From Amphiscolops sp. MND2022 (lineage: Eukaryota), in contig OZ076409.1 of NCBI GenBank assembly GCA_964187785.1, forward strand, positions 19,220,001 through 19,284,000: a stretch of DNA of 64,000 nt, written 5' to 3'. Under the pieces are notes generated by a model. The model was not told the DNA's origin. It saw nothing but the letters and a program-made list of their open reading frames with translations, and did no database searches. This document shows positions 20,301 to 63,487 of the stretch, piece by piece (within the stretch, counting starts at the first letter, position 1; each line of letters starts with the position of its first letter). Both the position numbers and the translations under genes were made by a program.

Positions 20301-20899
20301 GGCAGTGGTTCGAATTCGAGGCAAAATTATCTGACAAGATGTGTCAAATTCTATGTTCTTTGATCTCCTCGGTGAGTACATTTGTTTTATTGAAAAAACG
20401 CAGACAGTTTCGCTTTTCCTTCAATAAAATAACGAAGCTCTTGTGTTGAAGCTGGGAAAATAACTCAGATAAAACAAAGCAACTGATTTTTTCTTTTTCA
20501 AAGTTGAACTCAGTTTTAACAATTCGAGTGATGTTACATACTGGTGACCGCTAGCGCTCTGTCATTTTTTGTTTTGACCAACAGAAAAAAATATTCGTTT
20601 GGGTCGGATTGGTTCTCTTTAAACAAACGTCTATTACCCAGTTCAATTGATAGATAAATAGAGAGATGAACAGATAAAGACTTAAATTCCTTTTCGGAAG
20701 CAAATAAAACAAAATGTGAAGAGGAAATAGTACAAAATTTGATTGTTAGCGCCTGCAGAAAGAGCAAAAGCATTGTGCAAAGAAAGTACAGGGTTTGATG
20801 GGCAAAAAATTGTATCACGAAGAGACCTTGAATAAGCGGTCAGCTTAGATAAAAACAATACAAGAAGGCCAATTGAATGAAGTTGATGATGAGTTCACC

Positions 20900-33360: not shown

Positions 33361-34091
33361 TTTCTTTTGTCGGATAAGATGGGTTTTACACGGTAAAAAT
33401 AAAATCCGGTAAAAACGGTCTAAGTTCGTATGTTGCGGTATGAACTGAATCTACGGTAGAGGTCATGATGGCAGCATGTCACGGTACTGAAATAATAGCT
33501 CAGCTGAATAAAGACTAAATAGACAAAATTAGTTTAGATCGAAATTGCGGACGGTTGAAAAATGCAATCAGTTGAAATTGTGAGCAGTTGAAATGGCAAC
33601 AGTTGAAATTGCATAGATTGAAAGTGTATAGGAAAAAATGTCAAGTAACCGTTTTTCGTAGTGTGAGATCGAGAAGAGACTTCTGAATAATTATTCCTGA
33701 GTTTATTTAAATGACTTTGCTGTGTTTGTTTCTCACGTGGGAAAGAGTTTTTGTCTGTTAGAAGATTGCGATACTGTAGTATTCGACACTGTGCGGCTTC
33801 GTAGAGATTTTTTAAAGTCAAAGAACATTTTACCACGTGCTACCACAAAATCGTACTATTTTGTTTTTCATGGTGTTAGGTCAAGGAGAAGTCCATATTT
33901 TGAGTCATGCTAAATTTAAAGTGCAGCCAGGGGCAGCGAAGCGCTCCTTTTGATTCTTTTATTGTTAAGTATTTGAAAGATGCTAAATGAGACCAAAAAG
34001 CGTTTTGCTTCCTTCCAGTTTTTCCGGGAATACATTTTTCAGATTTTTGTCGTCTCTAAATGGTTACCCTTTTGGTATTTTGAAGACAAAG

Positions 34092-36349
34092 TGTTACGAC
34101 TATTAACCGGTGTTGTTTTAGAACTAGTCGCAGTTTGTGTCTTGACTGGAGTGGACGTTCTCGTCACGGAGATGTTTTCTTGTTCAGAATCAGAATCTTG
34201 TATGTTCGAGCTAATTGAGCGTTTCTTGTTCGCTGGTGCTATTAATTTAAGCATTTCCTTTTGGTTTTCGGCTAATATCTTTGTTAGATCAGTCATTATT
34301 TCTTTCCTCAGAGTTGTTTTTATTTCCTCCAGGTTTTCAAACTCAAGTCTAGGATTTTTACTAGAACTGGGTATCAGGTTTCCAGTAGAGTTATTTTCAG
34401 TTAAGGAAGCTTCGAAATCTCCTGACACTAAATCAGCTACAGCTTTCCTCTTCTGGCTTCTAGTGGTCATTTTTGATGTTAAAAAATGATTCTTCGGCAA
34501 TAGATGAATTCTTCGAAGATGATTTTGTTCAACGTTGAAACAACGAAAACAGTTTAAGTTTATTACAACTTGCAAAACACAACTAACTGACTTTACATGT
34601 CTCGTCTAAGTATATATACCTTCTTAGCGTCATTTGTTCCTCACCTAAAAATTCCTAGGAATCGCAAAATTAGGTTTGTTCAACAAAAAGCGCTAATGAT
34701 TCATATCATTTCAGTCGCGCGTCGTAAAAATCAGGCATCAAAATTCCTAGTTGCGTCAGTGTTCCGTAAATTTGTTGAAATCATTTTTGTTCAGGCAATC
34801 CCATTTCCTGTTTAAGTCTCAAAATTGCGGTAAAATAAAAGTCTAGCTTGCATTTTCATCAGCGTAAGTACGCCGGCATGAACAATTAGTCAACTTTCAA
34901 TTTGGGAGATTGAGATTCGAAGTAAAAGAATGACTCGCAAAAATTAACGAAATTGAAACGAGGCAAAAGGAATTTTGGACTACTGATATTTGAATATTAT
35001 TGAGGAACAAGCAACGCTAAGAAAAACATAATGATGATTAATCGGTTAATTTTGTAAACTGAACAACTGCACCAACAGAAAATCCAACTTTGACCTATAC
35101 GTGGCCATAACGTAACAAGTACGAATTGCGAAGTACAAATAGATAGGAAAGAAATGTATTTGCAGGCAATAATTATTCTGCACTCGATTGGGCTTCGTAT
35201 ATGAATAAACAGGGCAGGCATCCTGCATCAATAGCACTTGGTTTGGGTTTTGACGTTGACCTTACGTTACGTTCTGTGAAACATTTTAATGATAAACAAC
35301 TAATCACTGAATACATAAACTCTTAATGTAACGTAAGGCACACGTGAATTGAGAAACTATTGCAATAGCACCGTTACTCTTCGATCATAGTTTTAGCCCC
35401 TTCTTACAGTACAACCTTTTACATGTGGACTTGTTTTCAAAAACCCTTTAAGTGCGTCGATTCAGAAAAAATCCTTATTTGATTTCGGTTTAAACTAATA
35501 CTTCACCGCTATTATTTTACGAATTGTTCCGTACGTATTAAGATTGGTTATAGCTGAACGGCGGAATACAATTTTACAATCCGCTCCGTAGCTGTCCCGT
35601 ACGTATTAAGGTTGCTCATAGCTTAGCTATCGGACCAAGCGGAGAGAAAGCGGAGTGCGTAGGTGAAATCATTCTCTCTCTCTTATTCCAATTGGTGTTG
35701 CTAGGGGCAACCGAAATTGCTTCTATTCAACTTAGCTAAGAATAGTTCTATCAATAGAGTGACGTTATTGGTCCGTAGAAGCAAAATTCCTAATATTAGC
35801 TCAGTAGATTGGCGTTGCCATAGCGTTGTAAATATTTGCCTAAATCACTTGGCTGTGCTTTAAGTGAATATTGACAACCACTTCATCTCTGGAAAACAAT
35901 TCCGCTCTATTATTTGTCTGTTCCTTTTCATTTTAGATTGTATGAATTCCGTTGGGATCTCGGAATTGAATTTATTTTAATGTTTTCATTTTAGTGTGGA
36001 CCAGTGGAAGGAATGATCCCAATTATAAATGTTCATTTTAGTGTTTAGATTAGTATGGCAGAAAATCAGAAGATCATACCGGAAATGAAAAATCTTATCA
36101 CGCGCGGAGAATAGTTAACCGGAAGTTTTAGTTAAAAATCATTTCTGAAAAACGTTCCGTAACGTTTACGTTAGGTTTTGTATTCGAGAAATTATCTGCA
36201 ACCGATTTAGCTGTACTGTAAGTAAAATTTAGATCAGTTTAAATTTAAGTTAGTTTAATAGAGTTTACCTCGGCCTTGTCCCCGGCCAATTTCGAAACCA
36301 GGTATCCCACTGCAGCAGCTATAATCCCGACCGGGAGCGGGTCGTGACA
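34092..36349 (-). repeat. 3' LTR (2258 bp)
   Basis: Direct repeat of 48042-50299, preceded on the minus strand by the PPT. Confidence 0.97.
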
Positions 36350-37124
36350 GGGCCCCTCTTGAAGCAAGAGACAAGGGTATAGCTCGGCAATGGGGAATTT
36401 CTTTCCTGATGATGACAGGGGGACGGCCGTTAAGAATCCGCGTGCCGCGACTACGTCCTCTTCCCGAAGTCATTTTGGTTATGAATCTTTCTTCTTCTTC
36501 CATTTCTCGAAGCTCCTGTTCTCTTCGCATCGTCTCGATAGGGCATATCTCCGGCGGCTTAGTAGGGTCGCTTAACGCACAATTGCATTGCTCTCTTTTG
36601 GTCGGAGGGGGGGCATTCTCTTTAGCTCCGTAGTGAGTGCGTCCACGGCCAACTGTTGCGAAAAACTGCCGATCTTCTATGTCTAAGCCGTGTAGTGAGT
36701 CCAAATCTGCCAGCGAAGGCTCATTCAAGTCATTCAGCTTGACTGTGTTTGGAGCTCTTTCATTTCCTAATTGGGGAATGTTTGCCTTTTCTTTTAGGAC
36801 TGGTGTTGGTCTTGTTTGGGGCTGGCTCGGCGGCGTATCCGGTTCTTCGTAGAAGTCGGTATCTGAGTTAGGGTTTACTGCTGGCGGTAGATTAAAACTT
36901 ACTCTCCCTAGCTTTTTCTTTTTGCTGGGGGTAGGGCCGCGCTTTTTCGGAGAACAGTCAGACTCGGATGTTGAATCTGTTTCAGCTTCACTCCCACGGA
37001 ATGCTTCCGTTGACGAGTCACTAAGAGTGCTGATCGTGTTGAGGGGTAATGCCTTCAATGGCGTACTGCAACGGTTATTATCTTCGTCGGAAGATATATC
37101 TATCACCAACGAGTATCCGTTCAT
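36255..37124 (-). CDS. Sense accessory ORF (289 aa, disordered, SIM-like and NLS-like motifs) spanning the PPT and ending in U3
   Basis: ATG at 37124; LVIDISSDED, PKKRGPTPSKKKKLGR, RG-rich C-terminus; the last 95 nt lie inside the 3' LTR. No signal peptide or transmembrane helix visible. Confidence 0.65.
   Translation of the reverse strand: MNGYSLVIDISSDEDNNRCSTPLKALPLNTISTLSDSSTEAFRGSEAETDSTSESDCSPKKRGPTPSKKKKLGRVSFNLPPAVNPNSDTDFYEEPDTPPSQPQTRPTPVLKEKANIPQLGNERAPNTVKLNDLNEPSLADLDSLHGLDIEDRQFFATVGRGRTHYGAKENAPPPTKREQCNCALSDPTKPPEICPIETMRREQELREMEEEERFITKMTSGRGRSRGTRILNGRPPVIIRKEIPHCRAIPLSLASRGALSRPAPGRDYSCCSGIPGFEIGRGQGRGKLY
36350..36360 (-). promoter_or_regulatory. Polypurine tract AAGAGGGG(CCC)
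   Basis: Minus strand reads aagaggggccc|tgtcacg at the 3' LTR boundary. Confidence 0.65.
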
Positions 37125-37282
37125 GATTGCAGAGATTAAGTTTTGTAGGATTCTGGCTTATGTCTTCTTTGACTAGTTCACAGAGCATTAGTTTGGCAGA
37201 AGATGCTGGTCAAGCTTTTATGAAAATTGGACGACAAATGAACGTTTCAAATTCTTTCCTTCGTAATTTTTAACGAAATTCT

Positions 37283-37445
37283 ATTGGTCGGTTTTTCCGC
37301 TTTCGTTTCGGTGCGTCTCGAAATGAAAGAAACGAGTTCTTTCTTACTGCGTTGTGATTGGTCGAAATAATTGATGAAAACTTCTAATTCTAGTAGCCGT
37401 CCTCTTTTCGGTTAATGGCGTAATGACGTCACACAGTTTCATTGG
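37283..37445. promoter_or_regulatory. Putative internal bidirectional promoter
   Basis: ATTGG (CCAAT) at 37283, 37357 and 37441; TGACGTCA at 37424-37431; lies between two divergent start codons (37124 on -, 37715 on +). Confidence 0.45.
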
Positions 37446-37714
37446 TGTATTACGCCTGTGTTCCGTGATCTCCTGATGATTTTCTTAATTCTTCTTTAGC
37501 ATTTCTTGGTGGATTTTTATCCATCTTTTGGAAACGTTTTGTTCCGTCAATGCCATAATAGGCTTTTAAAAGGAAAAAGGAGATTGGAACATAGATGATT
37601 TTCTTTCCTGTAAAAATGATGCTGTTGATCCTTTTCTTGTCTTTTACGTTCGCTTTGCGTAGTTTTCTTCTTGATTTTTCCTTTTGTTTTAGATTTCTTG
37701 ATTTATTATTCTGG

Positions 37715-40700
37715 ATGGATGGTGATTTTGGTCCTCCTGCTGGTACTGGTGCAAAGTTCGTCAGTGGAAACGAGACAACATTCAATTTCACCGATGATGA
37801 TGTTGTTCCTTCTGACATCGATATTTCTCGTTCTGCTTCGGGTTGGTAAAATCTTTCTGACTTCCTGGGCAATAGGACTATTGTTTTGGTGATCAGCCTT
37901 TTATAGTCTTACCCGTAACTCTGACGCGTCTGAACCAGATCTTGATTTTCAGTAACTCAACCCATTGCGCTGCCCGGGCTTAGCTCCCATACGGAGGCTA
38001 GTCGTTCTTTGGTTCCCGTGGGACTCCCTTCCATTACCGATGCATTTCCGGTTGCCTCTGTCAACGCTATCCTGACGACTGTTCTTGCTGGTTCTGGGCA
38101 TGCTGCTTCTTTCCAGCCTGGTTCCTCTTCGTTGTTAGAGGCTCCCGACGTCAGTACTGGAGTTTCGCGAGATGCCACCGGATTTGGTTCTCAGCTTCAA
38201 GATGCTGCTGTTGTTAGTGAGCCTCGTGGAGGCGAGGCCGTTCCGGCCTCCCCAAAAGAAAGTGGAGGAGGAAGAAATGATGTGGAAGCTGCGACTGTCG
38301 ATGTCATGGAACCAAGTTGTTCTCGTGAGCGGGCTGTGAAGTTTTCGACTCCGCCACCGCAACGTCAAGGTGGTCATTCTCCTAGTTTACAGGAGCTTAT
38401 GGCTGAGGGATGGAGCAGTTAGTTGTTTCTCTTTTTTTTTCTCATCCTTTCCTTTTCTCTTCTCTTCGTTTTGTGGAATGCTTGTATGGAGTTGTTCAAT
38501 TTAGTCTTCTGGTTGGGTTTCTCAGAGTGGTTCGGGATTCCATAGTGTTTCCACCTAATTGTTTTGATGTTTGTTATAGGTGATCCAGAAGCGGAGGAGG
38601 AGGTGTTAGCTTTCCCCGGCAATACTCCGTTGAGTCCGATTGACTTGGCGCAATTTGGGCGTCATCTGATTTCTGAGGTGGAGACTCGGGCAGTACAAAG
38701 TATCGAGACAGGTACGTTAGTATGTCATAGTTGATAGGGGGTTGTTTAGGTGTGGTTGGGGTTTTGGGGTCGCAATATCGTGTGTCATATTTATAGATGG
38801 TTGTGTTATCGTTTGCAGGTTTCACGAAGTTGTCGAAGAAGATTGGAGATCGCTGCCAGCGGCGAGTGCGAACTTATGGGAATCGCAAGCATTTGAAGAG
38901 ACGCATGTTATCTTTGCATCCCGCATATTCCAACTTTGTCAGTGGCTCTAAGTGCGGGGAGCCTACGTCCTTCTTTTGTCGAGTGTGCAATCGAGATGTG
39001 CGGATGAAGGCACAAGGATCTGGCGAGTTTAAACGTCACTTCGCATCTGATGGGCACTGGTTTCGTGACGTGCGCTACAGAGTACATTCAGGGTTGCCCG
39101 TATACAACAGATGGTTGGAGCCTATGGAACTGACTGCCGCTCAGATTGCGGAATACAAAGCTCAACCTTTTGTGGACTTGGCAGAGGGGTTTCCCTTTCC
39201 AGAAGATTTGGTGCCCAAACATGCCCAAGTTGATTCAAAGGTCCCATTTATGACCATGATCTCGGCCGTCTGTGAGTGGCTCCGGAGTGGCGGCGATTTC
39301 ACGTTGCTGCGACGTTTATGGGCGTGTTTCCGAGCTTCTTTGGGTGAGAGGGCGCCCGAATATCAGCTGAATTGGAGTCGTGCTGAGACGGTGGTAAGTA
39401 GGGGTATTACATATTTTTGTGGTCTTTGGGTTCATGAGCTTTGTCTGTATCGTTTTCCCTCTTTTTCCCTTTTTTTTTCTTCTTTTTTCTTTTCTTCTTC
39501 GGGAGGGGGGGGCAGTAGTAGTGTGGTTTTGTAGTCATGGTATTTGTATATTGTTTCAGTCCTTGCTGTGTCGTGGCCTTGCTCCTCGGGTGTTGCGTTT
39601 GGTTCTCAGTGCAGTCGGGACGCGCAATGAATATGCATTGTTCTATGAGAAAGACGCGGATGTGGAACGATGCTTTGTTGTGTGCTGGTTGGATAATGCT
39701 CTGCAGAAAATCTGCATTGGTCAGGAAGTTTTGGACCAGCCTATGCCCAAATCCGAGTTGGTTCCTTTGGCACAGTTCGTCCATAGTGTGCAAAATGCGC
39801 GCCTTCCCTTTTGTGTCAGCGGTGCTAGTCCGGTGCTTCTTCGAGTGATAGAGGACAATCGTACTGATGGGAAACGACTTGTTATGCATCAACAGTTTTC
39901 CGAGGAGGTGTTCCTACAGTGTGTGCGTCAGGCACATCAGGATGTTTTCGGAATGGTAGAGGTGACAAGTTTGGTGGACTATGTCATTTTACGGCTAAAG
40001 AGCGCTGTGTACGAGGACTGGACGGATGGCAAGGTGTTGCTGCGCAAGGCCATTCGTCAAGGTTTCGTTGCCTTCCAGGATCTTCGTGAGGTTCTGACTG
40101 ATTTGGTGGACCTGTGGCCTTCAATTCGCCTGTTCATTAGGTGTACCGGATTGCCTCATGTGAAAGATCAAGCCGACAGTGTGAGTTTGTTGCATGATTT
40201 TTTTTTTCGGGAGGTTCTTCACGGTCGTCTTGTTGGTCATCTGTTGTTTTCCGTCTGCTTAGTTATTTTGTGTTGTTGTTTAGTTGAGAGGTATGGATTC
40301 AACTGTGATCTCAGACGGACTGGTGCCGTATCGTTTTGGGCTGTTGCAATTGATGTTGGATACTTTCCATATTCATTTGCCGAAGTTGAGACAGAGCCGC
40401 AGCGATTATGCATTCCATGGCTATGGTGAATTATGCAATTTCGTATACTGCTTGTTGATGAAGACACGCCAGTTATCAAGTCTTCCAGCTATTCACGATT
40501 GGGATGCATACATGGACGTGGAGAAGGCGGCAAGTTTCCCTGTTGCACCTATAGATGAGTTCTTGGCTCACTGTGATTATGGGAAGTCTCTTTTGTCGTC
40601 GAAAGCGAGCGAGATGCCAAAGTTTCGTGGTCGCTGCAGAGAATTTATCGATCGCCTCGTCACTCTGTTAGTGGAGAGTGCCAGCACTCGTTCCATTGTT

Positions 40701-41576
40701 TCGAAAGGTCTGTGCAGTTTCTGCCCTGAACTGATGTTAGAAGGTGACGATAAGTGTGCGTTTGATTTGTTTTTTGAGCTGTGTGATGGTCTTGTGAGGT
40801 GCGGCGCTTTATCTCGAGAAGAATGCAATGCTGCTGTGGATGAGTATAGTGCGTACGTGATCGAGAAACGCAGGCAGCATAGTCGATTGGAGCGTTCTGC
40901 CAGTTCTATTACGGACATTCGCCGCTACTTGCTGGATGATTTTGGGTTCCAGTCACGACGACATGTACTTCGTGTCTTCAAGTTGTGTTGTTTGCTTGTC
41001 GGTGAGCCCAACCGTGTTAGTCCTCCGTTTACTCTTGATCTGTCGAGTTGTAAACAGGCTGAAGGAAGTGTTCTTCTGTGTTGCAGAGTTGTTCAATCGT
41101 ATGTTTTGAGCGACGGTTATTCTCCGCAGTCATTATTTACTGAGTCATCTATGGGCCTAATTCGAGATGCAGTTTCTGATGCTGGGTTATTTTATATTGG
41201 CTCTGATTTTAACGTGTGGAAAGATTTGTGTGATGCCGGTGTGGACTCGTTTATTGCTTCTTTTTGCGAGCTGTATAAAGAATTTTTGGCAAAGCGACGT
41301 CAATCCAGTGATGAGCATTATACGGAGTGTAATCGAGTCAATCGTTTGTCTCGGGCAGAGCAGGGGTCTCGTAGTAGTTCCGTTGTGCAGAGTAGTTCCA
41401 GTTCTGTTAGTGGAAAAGGGAAAAGTGGTGGAAGTAAAGTTGGTGAAAAGAGCACTGATGGGAAGCAGGTCGGGAAGACGAAGAAGTCTAACGTGCAAGC
41501 TGGTGGTAGTAAAACGACTCCGAAGAAGAAGTCGAAGAAAGACATTGATCCTTCCGTACATCATCATGTCAAGTGA
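37715..41576 (+). CDS. Antisense spliced accessory gene inside the retrotransposon; exons 37715-37841, 37953-38417, 38580-38711, 38819-39393, 39560-40180, 40284-41576 (3213 nt, 1070 aa); BED-like zinc finger plus hAT-transposase-like body
   Basis: Five GT-AG introns (111, 162, 107, 166, 103 nt) with phases 1,1,1,0,0 that join six open segments into one frame; C-x2-C-x16-H-x5-H at 38977-39057. The first exon and start codon are the least certain part. Confidence 0.82.
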
Positions 41577-41722
41577 TTTGTATTGTGACGATTTGTAGAC
41601 TTTTATTATGTTTTGATGGTTCTGAAGGAACTATAATTTTGGCTTTGTTGCTGTTCTCTTTAGTTTAGATGATAATTTTACGTAGCTACTCCGGTTCGGT
41701 TTAGCCTGCTGATTGTTTTCAT

Positions 41723-44700
41723 TTAGTTTTGAGTTTGACGTAAATCGTCCGCTGTAGTTGAGTTTAGCATTCTGAAGTCAGGATCCACGTTGGGTCTCGG
41801 ATTAGGTCTCAAATTGTATCGTCCCACTTTTCTAGGATTGTATCCAACGACTATAGGCGGTAATTCGGGTGTTTTGGGAGGGCTGTGTATCGGTGGTGGG
41901 GTCAAAATATATGGGTTATCGCTGACATCTAGATCAAATGACGTTATATTGTCGGAAGGTGTTTTATCTGCTGCAGTATTTTCATTTGTGGCTGTTTGAG
42001 CCACGTCGCTTTCCGTTGTAGCTTCGTGTGTGGTTGTTTGAACCACGTCATTTTCCACTGTGCTTCCATTGGTGGTTGTTTTAACCACATCATTTTCCGT
42101 TGTAGTTTCGTTGCGTCCTGTTGTGTCTGTGATTTCTGTAACTGTGGCTTCTTCTGCGGCGTTTTCGGTATTGTTTCCGAACAGAACTTCTCCGAATTCG
42201 GTTTCCCAAGCTTGCGCGTACCAATCATTGTGGGTTGTTTTAACCTCTGGGTCTGGAAGATAATCTTCCCTTCTGACTGTTACGTCAGGTACTCGCTGAT
42301 TGGGCGCATATAGCCTTAGGCGAATTCTATGGAGTGTTTGGGTATATCTAGTTCCCGTGCGGCGTACGACGTAGTTGTTGTTCGAGAGTACTTTGACTAC
42401 TATGTAGGGTCCAGTCCAAATGCAATCTTTAAAAGCGAATTTCATCGACTGGTTGTCTGCCTTCGGATTGAGGACGTAACAGTAGTCATTGACTTTGAGC
42501 GGTGTAGCTGTTGCTTTCTTGTCATAGTACTGTTTGTATTTGAGGTAGGATTGCATTAGGTTTTCTTTGGCGGCATGGTGTATTTCGGATATTTGCTTCT
42601 GTAGTTGATCCGTTAGTTCGTCGTTGCTATCTTTTTTCCATTCGGGTTTCAATCCGAGTTTTATGTCTAGGATGTTGTACGGAATGCGTCCGTGAAATAC
42701 TGTTGTAGGTTCACAACCTAGGCTTTCATGATAGCTCGTATTGTAGTTCATGACCGCGATCTGGACATATTTATGCCACATAGAGCGTCGTTCTCCCGTT
42801 GATATCTTTAGGGAGGTTTTCAAAGAGGCATGAGTCCTTTCTAGGATGCCAATTGTTTGAGCGTGTTTCGTTGATGCGTGGCTTATCCGTATATCCAATG
42901 TTTGTGTTATTTGATTGACTACTTCTGATCTGAATTGTGATCCTTTATCTGTTAGAATGACGGTCGGCAGGTAGCAGTGTCGTGTCATGACGTCTATTAT
43001 GCATCGTGCGACTGTTTTGGCTGTCATGTCCTGTGTCGGGTAAGCGAAAAGGTAACGTGAAAAAACGTCCATCATCGTTTTGATGTGTTGGTATCCATTT
43101 GAGGAAGGTAGGTTTGGTAGAATGTCTACTTCTAGGCAGTCTTCTGGTCCCATTGTGAATTCAGTGTTGCTTAGCATTTTAGGGCGTATTTGTCTTGTGT
43201 CAATTCTTTTATTGGCAATGCAGTCTTGACAGCTGGTTACCCAAGCTCTGATTTTACGTGCAAGACCCGGGAAGTAGTATTTCGCTCTGCATTCTTGTAT
43301 CATTTTTGCGATTCCTGGATGTTTATTTGTTTTCCCATGTAGAGTGGCCAAGAGTTCTGGGACTAGGTGTTTCGGAATTATGATTTGATTATGGGTGACT
43401 GATCCGTCTTCTCCGTAGTATTTCCGCATCAGAACTCCATCTTTCATTATGATTCTTTCTTCGTGGCGTAATAGGTTACGTCCTCGTGGTTCGGTTTTGA
43501 GAAGGTGTTTGTCATATTCTTCGTGTGAAATCCGTTGTTTCAGTGCTTTGAGGAGAGGGTCTGCATCTTGCTCGTTTCTGATCCGTGCATTTTCTTTGAT
43601 TGCACCGAAGGAGTAGACTGCGGAGTTGAGTGGTATCTTGATGACTTCGGTTACTTTTGTTGATAATTCTCTCTCATGTTCGTCTAGGGCGCGTCGCTTG
43701 CTGAGTGCTTTTCGGGCAAAGATTTCTTGTTCAGATTCATCTTCGTCATCAGGTAGGAAGAAAAGTTGTTCTTCATCAGCTACATCTGATGATTGTAGAT
43801 TGACCTCAATTGGGGACGTTAGGATGTCGTCTCGTAGCTTAAGTTGTACTTTTTCTTTCGGTGTAAGTTCGAGTCTTGAGAGAAAATCTGCTGCTGTGTT
43901 TTGGGAGCCTGCTACGTGCATGATTCGAAACTTGAATTGTAATACATAGTCGCAGGCATTCCAGAGTGCAGCGGGTGTCGTTTTGGTCTGGAAGAATCTC
44001 GTTACTGAGCGGTTGTCCGTTAAGACCAGGGTTGGAATTGTTGCTTCCCAAAGTATGTGACTGTATTCGAGGAATGCATGATAGATTGCTAAGAATTCCT
44101 TGCAGTAGATAGACATTTTCAGTTGTGCAGGTGAAAAAACTCGTGATCCGAACGCTACTGGTGCGAAAGTTTTCCGTTTGGAGAGTATTTTGCGTTCATC
44201 ATTCTCCTCAATCATGAGGGCGTAGCCTGACGCACGAAAGCTTGCGTCCGTCATTAGGACGTACTGTTTCCCTGCTATAGGCTGTCTTAGTGCGAGTCCA
44301 CAAGCTTCCGCTAAACTGGCGTTGATTTCCCTAAAGTTATCGACAAGTTCTTCTGAAATTCTGATCTTGGAGTCTGCTTTAAGAAGTTCGTACATGCCGA
44401 TGAGTTTTTCTGATAAGCGCGGTATGTAGTTGCGGTAATAGTTAACAAAGCCAATGTACTTTTGAACTTGTTTTTTGGATTTGGGGAAGCGTACTTTGGA
44501 GAGGAAATTTTTGACTTTTTGATCTTGCGGGGCTACTCCGTCAGGGGTGATGGTTCGTCCAAGAAATTCGACTTGGGTTACTCCAAAATGGCATTTTTCG
44601 ATGGTTAGTTTTAGTCCTGCTTTCCGGATGCATTTGAAGACTGCTCTGATATTTTTTATGAGCTGTTCCGTTGTGTTTGCGGCAATGCCAATGTCATCTA

Positions 44701-47020
44701 CGTATTGTGCACATTGATCGGCTTTAATGACTGAGTCCAGATACTCACGCATGAAGCTCGAAAAGGCTGATAGGGCTCTGCTTAGTCCTTGTGCCAGGCG
44801 ACGGTAGGCGAACGTCCTACTAGCAAAATTAAAAGCAAGTAACTCTACTGACCTTTGATCTGCCATTTGAAGGCAGTGATACGCCTGGGAGCAGTCGAGT
44901 TTGCAGAATAGTTTTTTCCCTGCTAGGTGTTGTGCCGCATCTGAGAGGGTGCTGACAGGGTGGTTGTTGTTGATGTAGTCATCTGCTATGAGTGCGTTGA
45001 TTTTGCGCAGATCCACCAGTAGTCTCAGTTTGCCGTTGGGTTTCCGTTGTGCAAATATGGGACTGGCGTACTTGGAGAAAGGGAGTGTCGTGATGATGCC
45101 GTATTTGTGCATCAGTGCCAGTTCCACTGTTAGGTCTTCTTTGAGGTTGATTGGGACGGGTAAACTCTGTGTGTAGACTGGTTTGTCGTCCTGTGGTGTT
45201 AGGCTGACTTTGAACTGTGTATTCATCCCGATATCTAGTCGGTGTCGAGCAAAGATGTCATTGAATTCAACAATGGTGTTCTCAAGTTTTTCACGATCTT
45301 TGCCCGTAATTAGTGAGTCTGTCCATTTGAACATTGATAGAAATTTGTTGCGAGAGTCTTCGTTTTCGGTTGGGTCAAGTTTTTCTAGTTCGGCAAGGTC
45401 TCGCAGTTCTTTCAGGATTCGCTTTTGTATGGGTGAATGTTCTTGTTCGTTGCCTGGGTGTTCTGGGGTTGGGAACCAGAATTTTCCTTCATTGTCTTCT
45501 GGCCGTTCTACTTGCATTAGTGCGTTGATGTACGTGATTACATCGTCATGGTCATTGAGGAGATTCAGGGCGGCAATGTCAACTGGACGGATCATCTTCG
45601 TTTCTTCTGGTTTCAGGATTTGCAGTTCAGCCATTTTGGTGTCGTTGGCTATTGTGTATGGAAAATCCGTGGTGTTGGCGATTTTAATTGGAAGCTTTTT
45701 ATCTCTAGCTGTTGTAATCGCTGGGGCTACTATTACTTTCGCGCATTCATCGAATTGTGGTAGGGGTTGTATTGTGCCCGTTATTGGGTGCTCAATACTC
45801 ACAGGGATTGTTGCGTAGATGACTCGGGTAGAGTGCGCTGGGATTGTATGCTTGGCTTCGGTCTTTATTGTGATGGGTTTGGGATTGCACTTTTGTCTTT
45901 CGTCTGTGAGCGCCATCGTGATTTGAATCTTGGGAAAGTTGATGGTTCCTTGTGCTGTGTCAAGGATTGCGGCATGCTTTCGTAGAAACGCTAATCCAAT
46001 TATGGGGAATGACGTTTGATTCATGATGATGAATGTTTCTTCAAAAGTGTAATCCCCTATCTTGAAGCGTAGAGTGTACGTGGCAAGTGGTTGTTCTAGT
46101 TCGGCATTGGCGTATTGCACTTTGAAAGGGGGTGGAGGTGCTTTGTTAATAATGCATTGACTCGCATTTTGGTGGAGTTTTTCAGCATCCCGTTCGCTAA
46201 TAGCATTAATGTACGCACCTGAGTCGACTAAGGCTTCGATTTTGACAGTGTTGAATTCGATTGGTAGGAAGAGCATTCTCTTTTTCTTCTTGAGGGCAAT
46301 TGCAGACATTAACGGGATGTAGTCGTCTTCCTTGTCGTGCTGGATGAATTCTTTGATGACATCTAGATCTTCTGGTAGTGTTGGGTGACATTCCGTTATT
46401 TCTTCGTCTTCAGCGGCTATTGCTGTGGCTGGCGCGGTTTGTGGTGATGACGAGAGCGAAGCGGTGTTTTCTCGCTGTTCTCTTGCTTGTCGTGACCATA
46501 TTGTTTTGTCTTCAATGCATAAGATGTTTTCGGCATCGATCGGTGTGGACGTGACGGTGACGGGTGCTGTTGGGGACGGTGTTGTTCTTTTTAGGATCGG
46601 TGACGGCGGTGACGGTAGGTTTGTGGTCTTCGTGGTTTGAGCTTGAGGGTTTGAGACTTGTATTTTGAAGGATAGTTTATTTGTACCATAGATGGTTGGT
46701 TCATCCCAAGGGTCACATCTGTAGTCTCTGTCATATATATAAATTCGGTCTGTTTTTGATTCCGGCAACGGTCTTTTGAGTGTCGCATAGTTATCAGGTG
46801 ACTCCGTTATCCACTGGGGTAGTGGTGTTGGGTCGTCTGGGTGTCTGGCGTTATGTCTGAGAATCATGCCTACGTTCCAGCGGCGTTGCCAGTCTTGAGT
46901 TGGTTCTTCATTACATTCAGTTAAAAAATCTTCTTCATACCTGTTTGGGGGGTCCTCTATCGTGTACGCCCTCGCGTCTACTTTTTCCCCAAATCGTAGG
47001 CGCGGCGATTTTAGTTTTTT
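41723..47020 (-). CDS. pol: Pol polyprotein (protease, RT, RNase H, integrase with GPY/F module); frame open from 47050, entered by -1 frameshift
   Basis: ALVDSGA protease; RT LDCSQAYH, QGL, YVDD; RNase H TDAS..KEFLAI..TDN..ADFLSR; integrase H..HPG..C..C, MDVFSRY, TDKGSQF, GILERTH; WTGPYIVV. No internal stops in 1714 aa. Confidence 0.97.
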   Translation of the reverse strand, partial: KKLKSPRLRFGEKVDARAYTIEDPPNRYEEDFLTECNEEPTQDWQRRWNVGMILRHNARHPDDPTPLPQWITESPDNYATLKRPLPESKTDRIYIYDRDYRCDPWDEPTIYGTNKLSFKIQVSNPQAQTTKTTNLPSPPSPILKRTTPSPTAPVTVTSTPIDAENILCIEDKTIWSRQAREQRENTASLSSSPQTAPATAIAAEDEEITECHPTLPEDLDVIKEFIQHDKEDDYIPLMSAIALKKKKRMLFLPIEFNTVKIEALVDSGAYINAISERDAEKLHQNASQCIINKAPPPPFKVQYANAELEQPLATYTLRFKIGDYTFEETFIIMNQTSFPIIGLAFLRKHAAILDTAQGTINFPKIQITMALTDERQKCNPKPITIKTEAKHTIPAHSTRVIYATIPVSIEHPITGTIQPLPQFDECAKVIVAPAITTARDKKLPIKIANTTDFPYTIANDTKMAELQILKPEETKMIRPVDIAALNLLNDHDDVITYINALMQVERPEDNEGKFWFPTPEHPGNEQEHSPIQKRILKELRDLAELEKLDPTENEDSRNKFLSMFKWTDSLITGKDREKLENTIVEFNDIFARHRLDIGMNTQFKVSLTPQDDKPVYTQSLPVPINLKEDLTVELALMHKYGIITTLPFSKYASPIFAQRKPNGKLRLLVDLRKINALIADDYINNNHPVSTLSDAAQHLAGKKLFCKLDCSQAYHCLQMADQRSVELLAFNFASRTFAYRRLAQGLSRALSAFSSFMREYLDSVIKADQCAQYVDDIGIAANTTEQLIKNIRAVFKCIRKAGLKLTIEKCHFGVTQVEFLGRTITPDGVAPQDQKVKNFLSKVRFPKSKKQVQKYIGFVNYYRNYIPRLSEKLIGMYELLKADSKIRISEELVDNFREINASLAEACGLALRQPIAGKQYVLMTDASFRASGYALMIEENDERKILSKRKTFAPVAFGSRVFSPAQLKMSIYCKEFLAIYHAFLEYSHILWEATIPTLVLTDNRSVTRFFQTKTTPAALWNACDYVLQFKFRIMHVAGSQNTAADFLSRLELTPKEKVQLKLRDDILTSPIEVNLQSSDVADEEQLFFLPDDEDESEQEIFARKALSKRRALDEHERELSTKVTEVIKIPLNSAVYSFGAIKENARIRNEQDADPLLKALKQRISHEEYDKHLLKTEPRGRNLLRHEERIIMKDGVLMRKYYGEDGSVTHNQIIIPKHLVPELLATLHGKTNKHPGIAKMIQECRAKYYFPGLARKIRAWVTSCQDCIANKRIDTRQIRPKMLSNTEFTMGPEDCLEVDILPNLPSSNGYQHIKTMMDVFSRYLFAYPTQDMTAKTVARCIIDVMTRHCYLPTVILTDKGSQFRSEVVNQITQTLDIRISHASTKHAQTIGILERTHASLKTSLKISTGERRSMWHKYVQIAVMNYNTSYHESLGCEPTTVFHGRIPYNILDIKLGLKPEWKKDSNDELTDQLQKQISEIHHAAKENLMQSYLKYKQYYDKKATATPLKVNDYCYVLNPKADNQSMKFAFKDCIWTGPYIVVKVLSNNNYVVRRTGTRYTQTLHRIRLRLYAPNQRVPDVTVRREDYLPDPEVKTTHNDWYAQAWETEFGEVLFGNNTENAAEEATVTEITDTTGRNETTTENDVVKTTTNGSTVENDVVQTTTHEATTESDVAQTATNENTAADKTPSDNITSFDLDVSDNPYILTPPPIHSPPKTPELPPIVVGYNPRKVGRYNLRPNPRPNVDPDFRMLNSTTADDLRQTQN
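41995..42120 (-). repeat. Three imperfect 42-nt tandem repeats encoding 14-aa Thr-rich units in the integrase C-terminal tail
   Basis: TTENDVVKTTTNGS / TVENDVVQTTTHEA / TTESDVAQTATNEN. Confidence 0.8.
46965..47020 (-). promoter_or_regulatory. Programmed -1 ribosomal frameshift signal (A AAA AAC plus downstream stem-loop)
   Basis: gag ends CCA AAA AAC TAA; pol frame reads AAA AAA CTA AAA TCG; downstream CGCGCCTAC..GTAGACGCG can pair. Confidence 0.8.
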
Positions 47021-48420
47021 GGCTGAGAGGACGTGGTAGGTACAGGTTGTTCACTGATTTTGTTGGTTGGGATTGTGAATTCTCGTTTCTTCTTCCTGGG
47101 GTCATTTACTGCGTTGGCTCCGTTCCAACAATTCTCAGTTTTGTGCATCTTGCCACATGTATCACACTTGGGTTTGGGTACTTCGTTTTGGGCTGGGTCT
47201 TTTGTGTTTGTTTTGGCGGTATTGTAACGCTCTCGTTGAAGTTTGCGACACTGTGCCTTGTAGTGGCCATATTTGCCACAGTGAAAACAATGGCCTCGTT
47301 GTTGTTGGTCTTTTTTATGGTCCGTCACTACAGCGTCCACTGTGTTGAGTGGGACTAGGATTGTTTCATCGGGCGCACCTAGTCCGTTTAATCTCATTTC
47401 CCTCTCAAGATGTAAAACTATGTCATTGTAGGGTTTATCTTCCAAATATGCTCTGTTGAGGATCTTTTTGACGTGATCCGGCATTTTGGCGTAGATTGCT
47501 TTATCAATGAATTTTTGTGCTTCTGAGCCGAATGCTTCTTTTGCAGTTTTTTGCAGGGTGTCGAGGAACTCATGGAGTTTCTGTTTAGTGGGGTCAAAAT
47601 GCAGGGCGTCCCACTCACATCTCGCTTTAGCGGATGATTGGAAATCACCAAAGCGGCGTTTAAATGCCGTTATGACTTCTTCTAGGTTGTCTTTTTTGGT
47701 GTCATCGAGATTACAATACGCTTGTAGTGCGTTTCCTCGTAGGAGTGAATGAAAGTAGTTGATCTTTTGTATCTCGGTTAGGTGAGGATACATTTTGATA
47801 TTGTTTCGGAATAGGTCCTCAAAAAGTTCAAACTTTTCGGACTTACCATCGAAAACTGGGAGCGAAGCAGTGAGTGCTTTCGGCATCGGAAGTAGATTGG
47901 TTGATGGGAATGTCTGTGGTTGTGGGGCGAACAGGATCTTTGATGTGGAGGGACGGTCTTTTTGTTGTTCGTTGAGTATACGTTGCGTTTTCGGTCGTTT
48001 GGTGGGTTGGTTAGTGGAATCATTGAGGACTCCTGTCACCATGTTACGACTATTAACCGGTGTTGTTTTAGAACTAGTCGCAGTTTGTGTCTTGACTGGA
48101 GTGGACGTTCTCGTCACGGAGATGTTTTCTTGTTCAGAATCAGAATCTTGTATGTTCGAGCTAATTGAGCGTTTCTTGTTCGCTGGTGCTATTAATTTAA
48201 GCATTTCCTTTTGGTTTTCGGCTAATATCTTTGTTAGATCAGTCATTATTTCTTTCCTCAGAGTTGTTTTTATTTCCTCCAGGTTTTCAAACTCAAGTCT
48301 AGGATTTTTACTAGAACTGGGTATCAGGTTTCCAGTAGAGTTATTTTCAGTTAAGGAAGCTTCGAAATCTCCTGACACTAAATCAGCTACAGCTTTCCTC
48401 TTCTGGCTTCTAGTGGTCAT
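47011..48420 (-). CDS. gag: Gag, 469 aa from MTTRSQKRK; first ~126 codons lie inside the 5' LTR
   Basis: Capsid-like LPVFDGKSEKFELFEDLF..KINYFHSLLRGNAL; knuckles CFHCGKYGHYKAQC and CDTCGKMHKTENC; first ATG at 48420 (the track ORF starts at an upstream TTG). Confidence 0.9.
   Translation of the reverse strand: MTTRSQKRKAVADLVSGDFEASLTENNSTGNLIPSSSKNPRLEFENLEEIKTTLRKEIMTDLTKILAENQKEMLKLIAPANKKRSISSNIQDSDSEQENISVTRTSTPVKTQTATSSKTTPVNSRNMVTGVLNDSTNQPTKRPKTQRILNEQQKDRPSTSKILFAPQPQTFPSTNLLPMPKALTASLPVFDGKSEKFELFEDLFRNNIKMYPHLTEIQKINYFHSLLRGNALQAYCNLDDTKKDNLEEVITAFKRRFGDFQSSAKARCEWDALHFDPTKQKLHEFLDTLQKTAKEAFGSEAQKFIDKAIYAKMPDHVKKILNRAYLEDKPYNDIVLHLEREMRLNGLGAPDETILVPLNTVDAVVTDHKKDQQQRGHCFHCGKYGHYKAQCRKLQRERYNTAKTNTKDPAQNEVPKPKCDTCGKMHKTENCWNGANAVNDPRKKKREFTIPTNKISEQPVPTTSSQPKN
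48029..48041 (-). promoter_or_regulatory. Primer-binding site TGGTGACAGGAGT, tRNA-Leu-like
   Basis: Directly abuts the 5' LTR CA; resembles the complement of the tRNA-Leu 3' end (TGGTGTCAGGAGT). The tRNA assignment is from memory. Confidence 0.7.
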
Positions 48421-50299
48421 TTTTGATGTTAAAAAATGATTCTTCGGCAATAGATGAACTCTTCGAAGATGATTTTGTTCAACGTTGAAACAACGAAAAC
48501 AGTTTAAGTTTATTACAACTTGCAAAACACAACTAACTGACTTTACATGTCTCGTCTAAATATATATACCTTCTTAGCGTCATTTGTTCCTCACCTAAAA
48601 ATTCCTAGGAATCGCAAAATCAGGTTTGTTCAACAAAAAGCGCTAATGATTCATATCATTTCAGTCCCGCGTCGTAAAAATCAGGCATCAAAATTCCTAG
48701 TTGCGTCAGTGTTCCGTAAATTTGTTGAAATCATTTTTGTTCAGGCAATCCCATTTCCTGTTTAAGTCTCAAAATTGCGGTAAAATAAAAGTCTAGCTTG
48801 CATTTTCATCAGCGTAAGTACGCCGGCATGAACAATTAGTCAACTTTCAATTTGGGAGATTGAGATTCGAAGTAAAAGAATGACTCGCAAAAATTAACGA
48901 AATTGAAACGAGGCAAAAGGAATTTTGGACTACTGATATTTGAATATTATTGAGGAACAAGCAACGCTAAGAAAAACATAATGATGATTAATCGGTTAAT
49001 TTTGTAAACTGAACAACTGCACCAACAGAAAATCCAACTTTGACCTATACGTGGCCATAACGTAACAAGTACGAATTGCGAAGTACAAATAGATAGGAAA
49101 GAAATGTATTTGCAGGCAATAATTATTCTGCACTCGATTGGGCTTCGTATATGAATAAACAGGGCAGGCATCCTGCATCAATAGCACTTGGTTTGGGTTT
49201 TGACGTTGACCTAACGTTACGTTCTGTGAAACATTTTAATGATAAACAACTAATCACTGAATACATAAACTCTTAATGTAACGTAAGGCACACGTGAATT
49301 GAGAAACTATTGCAATAGCACCGTTACTCTTCGATCATAGTTTTAGCCCCTTCTTACAGTACAACCTTTTACATGTGGACTTGTTTTCAAAAACCCTTTA
49401 AGTGCGTCGATTCAGAAAAAATCCTTATTTGATTTCGGTTTAAACTAATACTTCACCGCTATTATTTTACGAATTGTTCCGTACGTATTAAGATTGGTTA
49501 TAGCTGAACGGCGGAATACAATTTTACAATCCGCTCCGTAGCTGTCCCGTACGTATTAAGGTTGCTCATAGCTTAGCTATCGGACCAAGCGGAGAGAAAG
49601 CGGAGTGCGTAGGTGAAATCATTCTCTCTCTCTTATTCCAATTGGTGTTGCTAGGGGCAACCGAAATTGCTTCTATTCAACTTAGCTAAGAATAGTTCTA
49701 TCAATAGAGTGACGTTATTGGTCCGTAGAAGCAAAATTCCTAATATTAGCTCAGTAGATTGGCGTTGCCATAGCGTTGTAAATATTTGCCTAAATCACTT
49801 GGCTGTGCTTTAAGTGAATATTGACAACCACTTCATCTCTGGAAAACAATTCCGCTCTATTATTTGTCTGTTCCTTTTCATTTTAGATTGTATGAATTCC
49901 GTTGGGATCTCGGAATTGAATTTATTTTAATGTTTTCATTTTAGTGTGGACCAGTGGAAGGAATGATCCCAATTATAAATGTTCATTTTAGTGTTTAGAT
50001 TAGTATGGCAGAAAATCAAAAGATCATACCGGAAATGAAAAATCTTATCACGCGCGGAGAATAGTTAACCGGAAGTTTTAGTTAAAAATCATTTCTGAAA
50101 AACGTTCCGTAACGTTTACGTTAGGTTTTGTATTCGAGAAATTATCTGCAACCGATTTAGCTGTACTGTAAGTAAAATTTAGATCAGTTTAAATTTAAGT
50201 TAGTTTAATAGAGTTTACCTCGGCCTTGTCCCCGGCCAATTTCGAAACCAGGTATCCCACTGCAGCAGCTATAATCCCGACCGGGAGCGGGTCGTGACA
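48042..50299 (-). repeat. 5' LTR (2258 bp)
   Basis: TG...CA ends; six substitutions versus 34092-36349 on a by-eye comparison (~99.7% identity). Confidence 0.97.
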
Positions 50300-57367: not shown

Positions 57368-57494
57368 CTGGATAAAAAAACAATACGCAATCCTTAAGTT
57401 ACAGAAGTAATAGAAATAGTTCATTTATCGATGTAAACTAAATGAGCGGCCAGTGGACGAAAAAAGGTAGGTTTTCAAAAACATTTTTCGTATA

Positions 57495-57699
57495 TGTGAC
57501 ATGAATACAGTTGAAGGTCAATAGTAACGCAATGTTACATAATTCTTACTTACTCTATGACCTTTTATGTTAATTACATAACATACCTGCTAGTAACTTT
57601 AATGTCATCTGTAGTACGATATAGTGGACACTATAACTTGATCTTACGTACAATACAGTATTACATTCCCAAACTTCTTTATTCCATTGGTATACAACA
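57495..57699 (+). repeat. 5' LTR (205 bp)
   Basis: tgtgacatg...tatacaaca, followed by the PBS. Confidence 0.95.
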
Positions 57700-57709
57700 T
57701 GGCGCAGTC
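57700..57709 (+). promoter_or_regulatory. Primer-binding site TGGCGCAGTC, tRNA-Ser-like
   Basis: Abuts the 5' LTR; same start as the tRNA-Ser PBS of Drosophila 297/17.6-type elements (from memory). Confidence 0.7.
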
Positions 57710-57712
57710 AGA

Positions 57713-63005: not shown

Positions 63006-63282
63006 TATTTACAGGAAACACCGTTAAACGAATAAACAGCCAAGCCAGCGGAAACACACAATCAGACTGAGGAGGACCGGAAGAGAAAACAGGAGGAACG
63101 TGAGGAAACCAGTAGCATGGTATCGAGGCGAGAAGCACCGTCAAATCTTAAACAAGAAACTGAACGGACTCATTATCAACAATTGAGTTGATACAACCTT
63201 TTTGTTCATACATGTAATCTAAATTTGTGTTATAAAATACAGTTATCAATTATACTAGATAACTTCCTGCCAGGGGGGGGAA

Positions 63283-63487
63283 TGTGACATGAATACAGTT
63301 GAAGGTCAATAGTAACGCAATGTTACATAATTCTTACTTACTCTATGACCTTTTATGTTAATTACATAACATACCTGCTAGTAACTTTAATGTCATCTGT
63401 AGTACGATATAGTGGACACTATAACTTGATCTTACGTACAATACAGTATTACATTCCCAAACTTCTTTATTCCATTGGTATACAACA
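63283..63487 (+). repeat. 3' LTR (205 bp)
   Basis: Same sequence as the 5' LTR; preceded by the PPT, followed by the TSD. Confidence 0.95.

Follow-up and report, generated by a model that had tools for sequence, protein, structure and literature searches.

Can a long, multi-intron gene be maintained inside an LTR retrotransposon, a type of element which passes through an RNA intermediate each time it is copied? This question is raised by a locus in a window of 64,000 nucleotides (assembly GCA_964187785.1, contig OZ076409.1), in which the initial annotation described a six-exon frame of 1070 codons, carried antisense between pol and the 3' LTR of a young element, and interpreted it as a maintained accessory gene. 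We rebuilt the exon model from the sequence, delimited the surrounding element and compared both with related copies and families. The observation holds, and the comparative evidence supports the interpretation. The gene is very likely a real, selected and element-borne spliced gene, although in the absence of transcript data its expression and splicing are inferred.

The element and its antisense gene

The gene lies in a complete Gypsy-type element of 16 kb on the minus strand (34092-50299). The 5' LTR (48042-50299) and the 3' LTR (34092-36349) are 2258 bp each, and not short, have TGT...ACA ends and are 99.73% identical. The element is flanked by the 5-bp target-site duplication CTTTG, at 34087-34091 on its 3' side and at 50300-50304 on its 5' side. 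A putative primer-binding site, TGGTGACAGGAGTCC (48027-48041, minus strand), directly follows the 5' LTR, but no tRNA gene was found within the window. The polypurine tract AAGAGGGG (36353-36360, minus strand) ends 3 nt upstream of the 3' LTR. The gag gene (47011-48423, minus strand; Pfam: DUF1759 / Retrotrans_gag) has its ATG 382 nt inside the 5' LTR. The pol gene (41723-46867, minus strand) encodes 1714 amino acids with Pfam hits in the order protease (residues 197-303), RT (608-773), RNase H (840-973) and integrase (1164-1333), and its stop codon lies 146 nt from the stop codon of the antisense gene.

The antisense gene spans 37715-41576 on the plus strand. Its exons are located at 37715-37841, 37953-38417, 38580-38711, 38819-39393, 39560-40180 and 40284-41576, and together make 3213 nt, or 1070 codons plus TGA (41574-41576), with no internal stop. 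The five introns are 37842-37952 (GTTGGT...CAG), 38418-38579 (GTTAGT...TAG), 38712-38818 (GTACGT...CAG), 39394-39559 (GTAAGT...CAG) and 40181-40283 (GTGAGT...TAG), with donors as given in the initial annotation, pyrimidine-rich acceptors and phases 1, 1, 1, 0 and 0. They are 103-166 nt long and T-rich (37-52% T, GC 0.36-0.42), compared to a GC of 0.45-0.54 in the exons. Intron 4 also has an in-frame alternative acceptor, with the exon starting at 39506. No strong sense-strand donor was found in the gene region, and no AATAAA or ATTAAA lies within 1 kb downstream of the stop.

The gene is between pol and the 3' LTR, as initially annotated, but it is not directly next to the LTR. A sense-strand ORF of 289 amino acids, ORF3 (36255-37124, minus strand), which ends 95 nt inside the 3' LTR, and a spacer of 590 nt (37125-37714) are found in between. 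The spacer is a candidate internal, possibly bidirectional, promoter, which holds the CRE TGACGTCA (37424-37431) and inverted CCAAT boxes ATTGGTC (37283, 37357). The CRE recurs in the same spacer of four other copies (L001, L004, L005 and L006) and is the only one in the roughly 21 kb of L001 and of L004. Between the window element and a further copy, L002, the spacer is 75% identical, against 65-69% for the exons. Intron 1 is unusually conserved, with 87-94% identity across modules whose exons are saturated. It shows no excess folding stability on either strand, and no Rfam family was found anywhere in the window. A sense-strand TATA box in intron 1, considered as a conserved ORF3 promoter, is lost in L002 and is not consistently placed in other families.

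Selection and exchange of the module

L001 is a copy found elsewhere which is 98.5% identical to the window element. All three indel events between the two in the gene span (3, 8 and 16 nt) lie in introns 2, 4 and 5, respectively, and none lies in the exons. The chance that all three fall in introns is 0.005. Of the 35 exon substitutions 20 are synonymous, which under neutrality has a binomial p = 1.5e-5. The dN/dS is 0.22 for the gene, 0.17 for pol and 0.21 for gag, so the purifying selection on the gene is about as strong as on gag and pol, although dN/dS between element copies mixes selection on active lineages with neutral decay after insertion. In L001 the AG of the intron 4 acceptor is mutated to TG, so that copy must use another acceptor or retain the intron, which is in frame there.

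Exon 6 ORFs of similar length were found in 63 protein clusters with about 745 distinct sequences at 31-99% identity, and there are 474 representatives for exons 4 and 5. The architecture of the window element, with LTR pairs that are 99.3-99.8% identical, recurs in L001, L002, L004, L005 and L006. An older copy is L008, and L010 and L011 are distant families, the latter from another assembly. In every context recovered pol converges on the gene and a small sense ORF3 precedes the 3' LTR, including elements whose pol is only 60-66% identical. An ORF of similar size was found at the same place and on the same strand in L001, L002, L004, L005 and L006, but sequence similarity to ORF3 was detected only in L001, L002, L004 and weakly in L008.

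In families with 31-55% protein identity, introns 4 and 5 are kept in position. For intron 4 the position is kept with GT-AG ends in L002, L004 and L005, and in L009 and L011 the protein match breaks at the same residue (433/434). For intron 5 (about residues 640/641) it is kept with GT-AG ends in L002 and L004, and the protein match breaks at the same residue in L011. Intron 4 is absent in the subfamily of L008 and P0105, the latter being a distant homologue which reads through the positions of introns 4 and 5 as one ORF of 890 amino acids. In distant pairs synonymous sites are saturated, with pN 0.26-0.33 against pS 0.70-0.83. ORF3 gives a pN of 0.20 against a pS of 0.72 between the window element and L004.

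For the same pair the gag-pol dS is only 0.10-0.15, while the dS of ORF3 is 2.4 and the pS of the gene is about 0.8. Nucleotide similarity resumes at 41671, between the two stop codons. The module of ORF3 and the antisense gene therefore has a much deeper history than the gag-pol it now sits beside, and has likely been exchanged between gag-pol backbones by recombination. The initial annotation described the element as cargo-carrying, but the gene is not recent cargo. It is an old, integral module of a clade of elements whose pol identity goes down to about 60%.

The persistence of the introns follows from established retroelement biology. The RNA that is reverse-transcribed is the minus-strand transcript, on which the introns read CT...AC and are not spliceosome substrates, so they are carried unchanged into every new copy. 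The same principle underlies antisense-intron retrotransposition reporters.

Predicted protein and possible roles

Exon 1 (ATG 37715) contains the motif SGNETxFxF..DD, which together with an MD start is also found in L002, L004, L005 and L006. Exon 2 is a low-complexity Ser/Pro/Gly/Ala-rich region with weak conservation, and exon 3 is conserved in L002, L003 and L004. Exon 4 encodes a CxxC-x16-H-x5-H zinc finger (about 38977-39057) with conserved aromatic residues, followed by a conserved region ending in LLRRLW. In the family alignment the finger residues C53, C56, H73 and H79 are 89-97% conserved. Mixed alignments of exon fragments, made to model P0105 or the 504-aa ORF of L001, stacked fragments from different exons on top of each other (MAFFT) and were discarded, and exon 5 was modelled alone. 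AlphaFold2 predicts an RNase H-like fold for exon 5 (three-strand meander, helix, strand, helix, strand, helix) with a mean pLDDT of 79. The three best Foldseek matches in the PDB are Hermes transposase, but these are below threshold (E = 0.018-0.075, probability 0.51 or less, TM about 0.2). No column with a conserved D or E was found at the end of strand 1 or just after strand 4, and position 88 is a conserved Gly, although this depends on the predicted model. Exon 6 is predicted to form an all-helical domain (mean pLDDT 68) with an invariant FCPE..GDD motif and conserved Cys/His, followed by a Ser/Lys-rich basic tail (KKKSKK). Its model matched nothing in the PDB or in BFVD.

Pfam searches with each exon, with 109 family members and with P0105, L008 and L010 gave no family and only weak hits to C2H2 fingers, none to zf-BED. 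Profile searches of exons 4, 5 and 6 against all PDB sequences found nothing below E = 0.6. ORF3 has no Pfam hit either. It is hydrophilic and Ser/Pro/Arg-rich and does not resemble a retroviral env-like ORF, by inspection and without a transmembrane predictor.

We are fairly confident that the gene belongs to the retrotransposon itself, whereas its mode of action is inferred without any significant homology. It would be transcribed from an internal promoter in the spacer and spliced, and would make a nuclear, nucleic-acid-binding and catalytically inactive protein with an N-terminal acidic motif and disordered region, a C2H2/BED-like zinc finger, an RNase H-like fold without a DDE triad, a helical domain and a basic tail. 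Such a protein might regulate the transcription of the element, or target or escort its DNA, a role comparable to the antisense accessory ORFs of plant Retand/Grande elements or to retroviral accessory proteins. That it is a nuclear nucleic-acid-binding regulator is about as likely as not, and its descent from a hAT-like transposase is tentative. Taken together, it is possible, though less likely than not, that a large clade of probably metazoan Gypsy elements took over a catalytically dead, hAT-derived DNA-binding protein as its own accessory factor, keeps it as a multi-intron gene by antisense placement, drives it from an internal promoter with a highly conserved first intron, and trades the whole cassette with ORF3 between lineages as a regulatory or targeting module.

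An alternative is that the protein is a self-limiting repressor, or that the main product is the antisense RNA, which would pair with genomic RNA and feed small-RNA silencing. Antisense transcription can generate dsRNA, as has been proposed for plant antisense aORFs (PMC7264820), and with only 146 nt between the stop codons and no nearby poly(A) signal read-through into pol is plausible. However, the synonymous excess and the exclusion of indels from exons show selection on the amino-acid sequence, which an RNA-only role does not explain. Furthermore, families carrying the gene are highly successful, with clusters of hundreds to more than 1500 pol variants, which fits poorly with a strong self-inhibitor. 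We consider this alternative unlikely, but a modulating repressor is not excluded.

More doubtful still is that the gene is a passenger, derived from a hAT-like DNA transposon or a host gene that was inserted or transduced into an ancestral element and has hitch-hiked since. The domain order and the Hermes matches would fit, introns are typical of cellular or DNA-transposon genes, and homologues occur without visible LTR context on L007 and L009, short contigs from two other samples. But these contigs, the only ones without LTR context, are too short (4-5 kb) to show one, a passenger would decay, and the gene is present in every family examined. No terminal inverted repeats were found around it, and the lack of conserved acidic residues at the ends of strands 1 and 4 indicates that it is probably not an active transposase serving its own spread.

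That the frame is an artefact of fortuitous joins is very unlikely, since, although GT and AG dinucleotides are frequent, many alternative in-frame acceptors exist and transcript evidence is lacking, all six segments are conserved at the protein level in divergent families (exon 2 weakly), the protein matches break at the positions of introns 4 and 5, and P0105 reads through both of these positions.

Comparison with known systems

Antisense accessory genes in LTR retrotransposons are documented mainly in plants, and their function is still unknown. The gene described here appears to lie outside plants, as a neighbouring Bel/Pao element, a group that is probably animal-restricted, and the DUF1759 gag family, seen on both this Gypsy gag and the Pao gag, point to an animal. 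In a limited search of the open-access literature, we found antisense aORFs only in plants and retroviruses, non-coding antisense RNAs in Drosophila micropia, and no animal Gypsy with an intron-bearing antisense gene. The case is unusually clear because the gene is large with several introns, is under measurable purifying selection, is present in hundreds of young copies and spans families diverged to synonymous saturation. It indicates that antisense placement can keep a normal spliced gene inside a retroelement over long periods, and that such a gene can be shuffled as a cassette, much as env genes are swapped among retroviruses. In genome annotation these ORFs are likely to be called as orphan host genes. 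The system also offers a tractable way to ask what an antisense accessory protein does for a retroelement.

Extra ORFs of bdelloid-rotifer LTR retrotransposons (Vesta/Juno GDSL, DEDDy) and accessory domains of planarian Burro (PMC5408684, PMC6431247) are also non-env accessory coding capacity acquired by invertebrate Gypsy-like elements and shared between element lineages. As described, they lie downstream of pol as ORF3 in rotifers, or in Burro as domains within the large polyprotein or an accessory ORF upstream of it, and have recognisable enzymatic or regulatory domains. Text searches of the two papers found no antisense or opposite-orientation ORF and no introns within them.

The hAT-superfamily transposases and their domesticated derivatives (Hermes, ZBED-type proteins) have a domain order that the predicted protein may match, with an N-terminal zinc finger of Cx2C...Hx5H type, an RNase H-like fold and a long helical region, and loss of catalytic residues is usual in domesticated copies. 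Here, however, there is no significant sequence or profile similarity to zf-BED, the hAT dimerisation domain (Pfam: PF05699) or any other Pfam family, the structural match is below threshold, no conserved acid sits at the expected DDE positions, no credible inverted repeats flank the gene, and the gene is mobilised by reverse transcription of its antisense strand.

The antisense genes of deltaretroviruses (HTLV-1 HBZ and relatives) appear comparable in that they are protein-coding, lie on the minus strand between the main genes and the 3' LTR, and in HBZ include a spliced isoform of a nuclear regulator whose intron survives replication because it is antisense to the genomic RNA. HBZ would be a small bZIP protein with one intron, transcribed from the 3' LTR. 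Here there is no bZIP, the protein is about five times larger, the likely promoter is internal and there are five introns.

The antisense additional ORFs (aORF-3R) of plant Ty3/Gypsy elements, maize Grande gene23, rice RIRE2, Silene Retand and PvRetro13 (PMC7264820, PMC11963269), likewise sit between pol and the 3' LTR, antisense to gag-pol, and are present in all or most copies of a lineage. They have their own internal promoter, shown for Grande, and are suspected nuclear DNA-binding regulators with no established function. There is no sequence relationship, as no hit to the TRP28 domain (Pfam: PF04195) that marks Retand aORFs was found for any exon or among the 109 family members scanned. 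The gene described here is also much larger, with 1070 amino acids and five introns, is paired with a second, sense ORF3, and belongs to a module that has likely been exchanged between gag-pol backbones.

Structure of the gene and of the surrounding element

We rebuilt the gene model from the raw sequence. Starting at the ATG at 37715 on the + strand and using the five donors named in the initial annotation, the first in-frame, stop-free acceptors give the exons 37715-37841, 37953-38417, 38580-38711, 38819-39393, 39560-40180 and 40284-41576, which together make 3213 nt, or 1070 codons ending in TGA. All introns are GT-AG and 103-166 nt long, with phases 1,1,1,0,0. All donors fit GTNNGT, the acceptors follow pyrimidine-rich tracts, and the introns are markedly more T-rich and GC-poor than the exons. 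The coordinates, the length and the splice signals are as given in the initial annotation.

The gene lies in an intact, recently inserted 16,208-bp Gypsy-type element on the minus strand. Its direct repeats (34092-36349 and 48042-50299) are 2258 bp each and 99.73% identical. Read on the minus strand, each repeat starts with TGT and ends with ACA, and the element is flanked by the 5-bp duplication CTTTG. The sequence TGGTGACAGGAGTCC, a candidate PBS beginning with TGG, follows the 5' LTR directly, and the purine run AAGAGGGG ends 3 nt before the 3' LTR. The gag gene (DUF1759 / Retrotrans_gag) runs from 48423 to 47011. Unusually, it starts 382 nt inside the 5' LTR (overlap 48042-48423) and reads across the LTR end and the PBS, so that the same coding start is duplicated in the 3' LTR (at 34092-34473), where it gives the 178-aa ORF at 34039-34575. 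The pol gene runs from 46867 to 41723 and is an uninterrupted 1714-aa protease-RT-RNase H-integrase polyprotein. At its 3' end three 42-nt tandem repeats (41980-42111, 71-81% identical) encode a repetitive Thr/Glu/Asn-rich C-terminal tail after the integrase.

The antisense gene is found in the 3' part of the element, with its stop codon 146 nt from that of pol. Between its ATG and the 3' LTR lie a 590-nt spacer (37125-37714) and a further sense-strand ORF of 289 aa (ORF3, 37124 to 36255), neither of which was mentioned in the initial annotation. ORF3 ends 95 nt inside the LTR. It is hydrophilic, starts with a SUMO-interaction-like motif LVIDISSDED, has a basic KKRGPTPSKKKK stretch and an Arg/Gly-rich C-terminus, and has no Pfam hit.

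Besides this element, a second, unrelated Gypsy-like LTR element with 206-bp LTRs that are 100% identical is found at 57494-63487 (+). Its gag, protease, RT-RNase H and integrase pieces are spread over several frames, so its pol is interrupted or frameshifted. In the flanks, several dispersed 100-350-nt repeats, 78-91% identical, lie at 4000-5100, 9000-9650, 14600-15600 and 55400-56300 and probably belong to a short interspersed repeat family of the host.

Conservation of the gene and history of the 3' module

A second insertion of the same family at another genomic site (L001), next to which a Bel/Pao element lies, is 98.5% identical over all 16.2 kb. Within the gene span the three indel events (3, 8 and 16 nt) lie in introns 2, 4 and 5, and none is found in the 3213 nt of exon (p = 0.005 by position alone). 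Out of the 35 exon substitutions 20 are synonymous (p = 1.5e-5 against neutrality), which gives a dN/dS of 0.22, against 0.17 for pol and 0.21 for gag in the same pair. The intron-4 acceptor of L001 is mutated from AG to TG, but there the intron is 174 nt, in frame and stop-free, so the reading frame survives either way.

The exon-6 ORF has 63 homologous protein clusters (31-99% identity, about 745 distinct sequences), all of which come from unnamed ENA assemblies. A phmmer scan of 1.84 billion representatives with exons 4-5 found 474 relatives. We retrieved the genomic context of ten relatives (numbered from L001). L001, L002, L004, L005 and L006 are complete elements with 2.3-2.5-kb LTRs that are 99.3-99.8% identical. 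In each of them pol converges on the gene, and a 240-300-aa sense ORF sits before the 3' LTR, although sequence similarity to ORF3 was detected only in L001, L002 and L004. L008 is an older copy with LTRs 94.5% identical. L010 has a pol only 62% identical to that of the window and belongs to a cluster of 1547 variants, while L011 comes from a different assembly and its pol is 66% identical. Both carry a 23-32%-identical homologue in the same convergent position. L003 is a rearranged locus (3782-21248), in which segments of 3-4 kb are repeated about 10.6-10.9 kb apart at 98% identity, giving two copies of the antisense gene (72% identical to that of the window) with fragmented pol pieces; it may be a tandem or recombined array of elements.

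Protein matches to the spliced product break exactly at residues 433/434 and about 640/641. In L002, L004 and L005 the gaps are bounded by GT...AG, while the intron sequences themselves are unrelated; in L009 and L011 the same breaks were seen at the level of the protein match only. Exon 1 (MD...SGNETxFxF..DD) and exon 3 are also recognisable across families. One subfamily, to which P0105, a distant homologue from a third sample, and L008 (4917-7417) belong, lacks introns 4 and 5 but still has introns further upstream, and in L007 (sample ERZ1742291) it reads through as a single 890-aa ORF. This independently confirms that the joined exons form one protein, and it indicates that introns have been gained or lost within an element-borne gene. 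For distant pairs pN is 0.26-0.33 while pS is 0.70-0.83, which is saturated. Long-term purifying selection is therefore clear.

The element of the window (WIN) and L004 have nearly the same gag-pol, with 94.7% nucleotide identity, 98-99% amino acid identity and a dS of 0.10-0.15. In contrast, their ORF3 has a dS of 2.4 (pN 0.20 against pS 0.72), and their antisense genes are about 50-56% identical in protein, with saturated synonymous sites. The divergent region spans 36350-41671 of the window, compared with L004:5895-11422, and high nucleotide similarity resumes at 41671, between the two converging stop codons. In the close pair WIN-L001 the dS of the gene and of pol are equal (0.025-0.027), so a different mutation rate is not the cause. 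The 3' module of ORF3, spacer and antisense gene has therefore been exchanged between backbones, presumably by template switching between co-packaged RNAs.

Candidate regulatory sequences and predicted protein features

The spacer at 37125-37714, between the divergently oriented ORF3 and antisense gene, holds a perfect CRE (TGACGTCA, 37424) and inverted CCAAT boxes (ATTGGTC at 37283 and 37357). The CRE recurs in the same spacer in L001, L004, L005 (twice) and L006 (three times). In L001 and L004 it is the only copy in about 21 kb, and about one is expected per 64 kb. The spacer is better conserved than the exons, with 75% identity against 65-69% for WIN-L002. Intron 1 plus the first 10 nt of exon 2 (37842-37962) is 87-94% identical among WIN, L002 and L004, even though the exons on both sides are saturated at synonymous sites, and it is more conserved than their gag-pol. 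It contains the palindrome GACGCGTC and, on the sense strand, TATAAAAG, but it has no unusual RNA stability and no Rfam match. We take the spacer to be a candidate internal promoter, possibly bidirectional, and intron 1 to be a regulatory or cis-acting element, although neither is proven and the function of intron 1 is unexplained. No canonical poly(A) signal follows the stop codon.

No Pfam families were found for any exon, for 109 family members or for the distant homologues, and profile searches gave no PDB sequence hits. Residues 1-240 are low-complexity, apart from the short acidic/aromatic exon-1 motif. Exon 4 carries CxxC-x16-H-x5-H, apparently a C2H2/BED-like finger, in which C, C, H and H are 89-97% conserved. 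The AlphaFold2 model of exon 5 (pLDDT 79) has the strand-strand-strand, helix, strand, helix, strand, helix order of an RNase H-like fold. Its three best PDB matches are the Hermes hAT transposase, but only at E = 0.018-0.075, followed by retroviral integrases and other RNase H-fold proteins. In this predicted model no acidic residue is conserved where the first two catalytic carboxylates would sit. Exon 6 is predicted to be an all-helical domain (pLDDT 68, with the core at 80-97) with an invariant FCPE..GDD motif and conserved Cys/His, and it matches nothing in the PDB or BFVD. The protein ends in a Ser/Lys-rich tail with KKKSKK. The apparent order of finger, RNase H-like fold and long helical region resembles that of hAT transposases, but we treat this ancestry as a tentative lead rather than a finding.

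Possible role and comparison with known systems

The gene is part of the element, is copied with it and is under selection, so the reading of the initial annotation, an element-encoded accessory gene that is maintained, is supported in its essentials, although expression and function remain to be shown. Because the replicated RNA is the minus-strand transcript, the + strand introns are never presented to the spliceosome as introns, and no strong donor exists on the sense strand in this region. They therefore pass through reverse transcription intact. We infer that an internal promoter drives a spliced mRNA for a nuclear, nucleic-acid-binding, non-catalytic protein, which may serve the element as a regulatory or targeting factor. 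Alternatively, the protein might be a self-repressor, or the role might be one of the RNA only. A hitch-hiking passenger conflicts with the selection data, as does a chance frame.

The closest functional parallel is the set of antisense additional ORFs of plant Gypsy elements (Grande, RIRE2, Retand, PvRetro13), which share the position, the orientation and the lineage-wide presence and whose function is unknown (PMC7264820, PMC11963269). There is no homology to them. HTLV-type antisense genes appear to share the logic of an antisense, spliced accessory gene. Reviews and surveys of invertebrate LTR elements with extra ORFs place them downstream of pol or within or next to the polyprotein, and text searches of these found no antisense case (PMC5408684, PMC6431247). 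No animal Gypsy with an intron-bearing antisense gene was found in the open-access literature searched. Antisense accessory genes of LTR retrotransposons are thus already known, and what sets the present gene apart is its size, its five introns, some of them conserved in position, its pairing with a second accessory ORF, the cassette exchange and a possible transposase origin.
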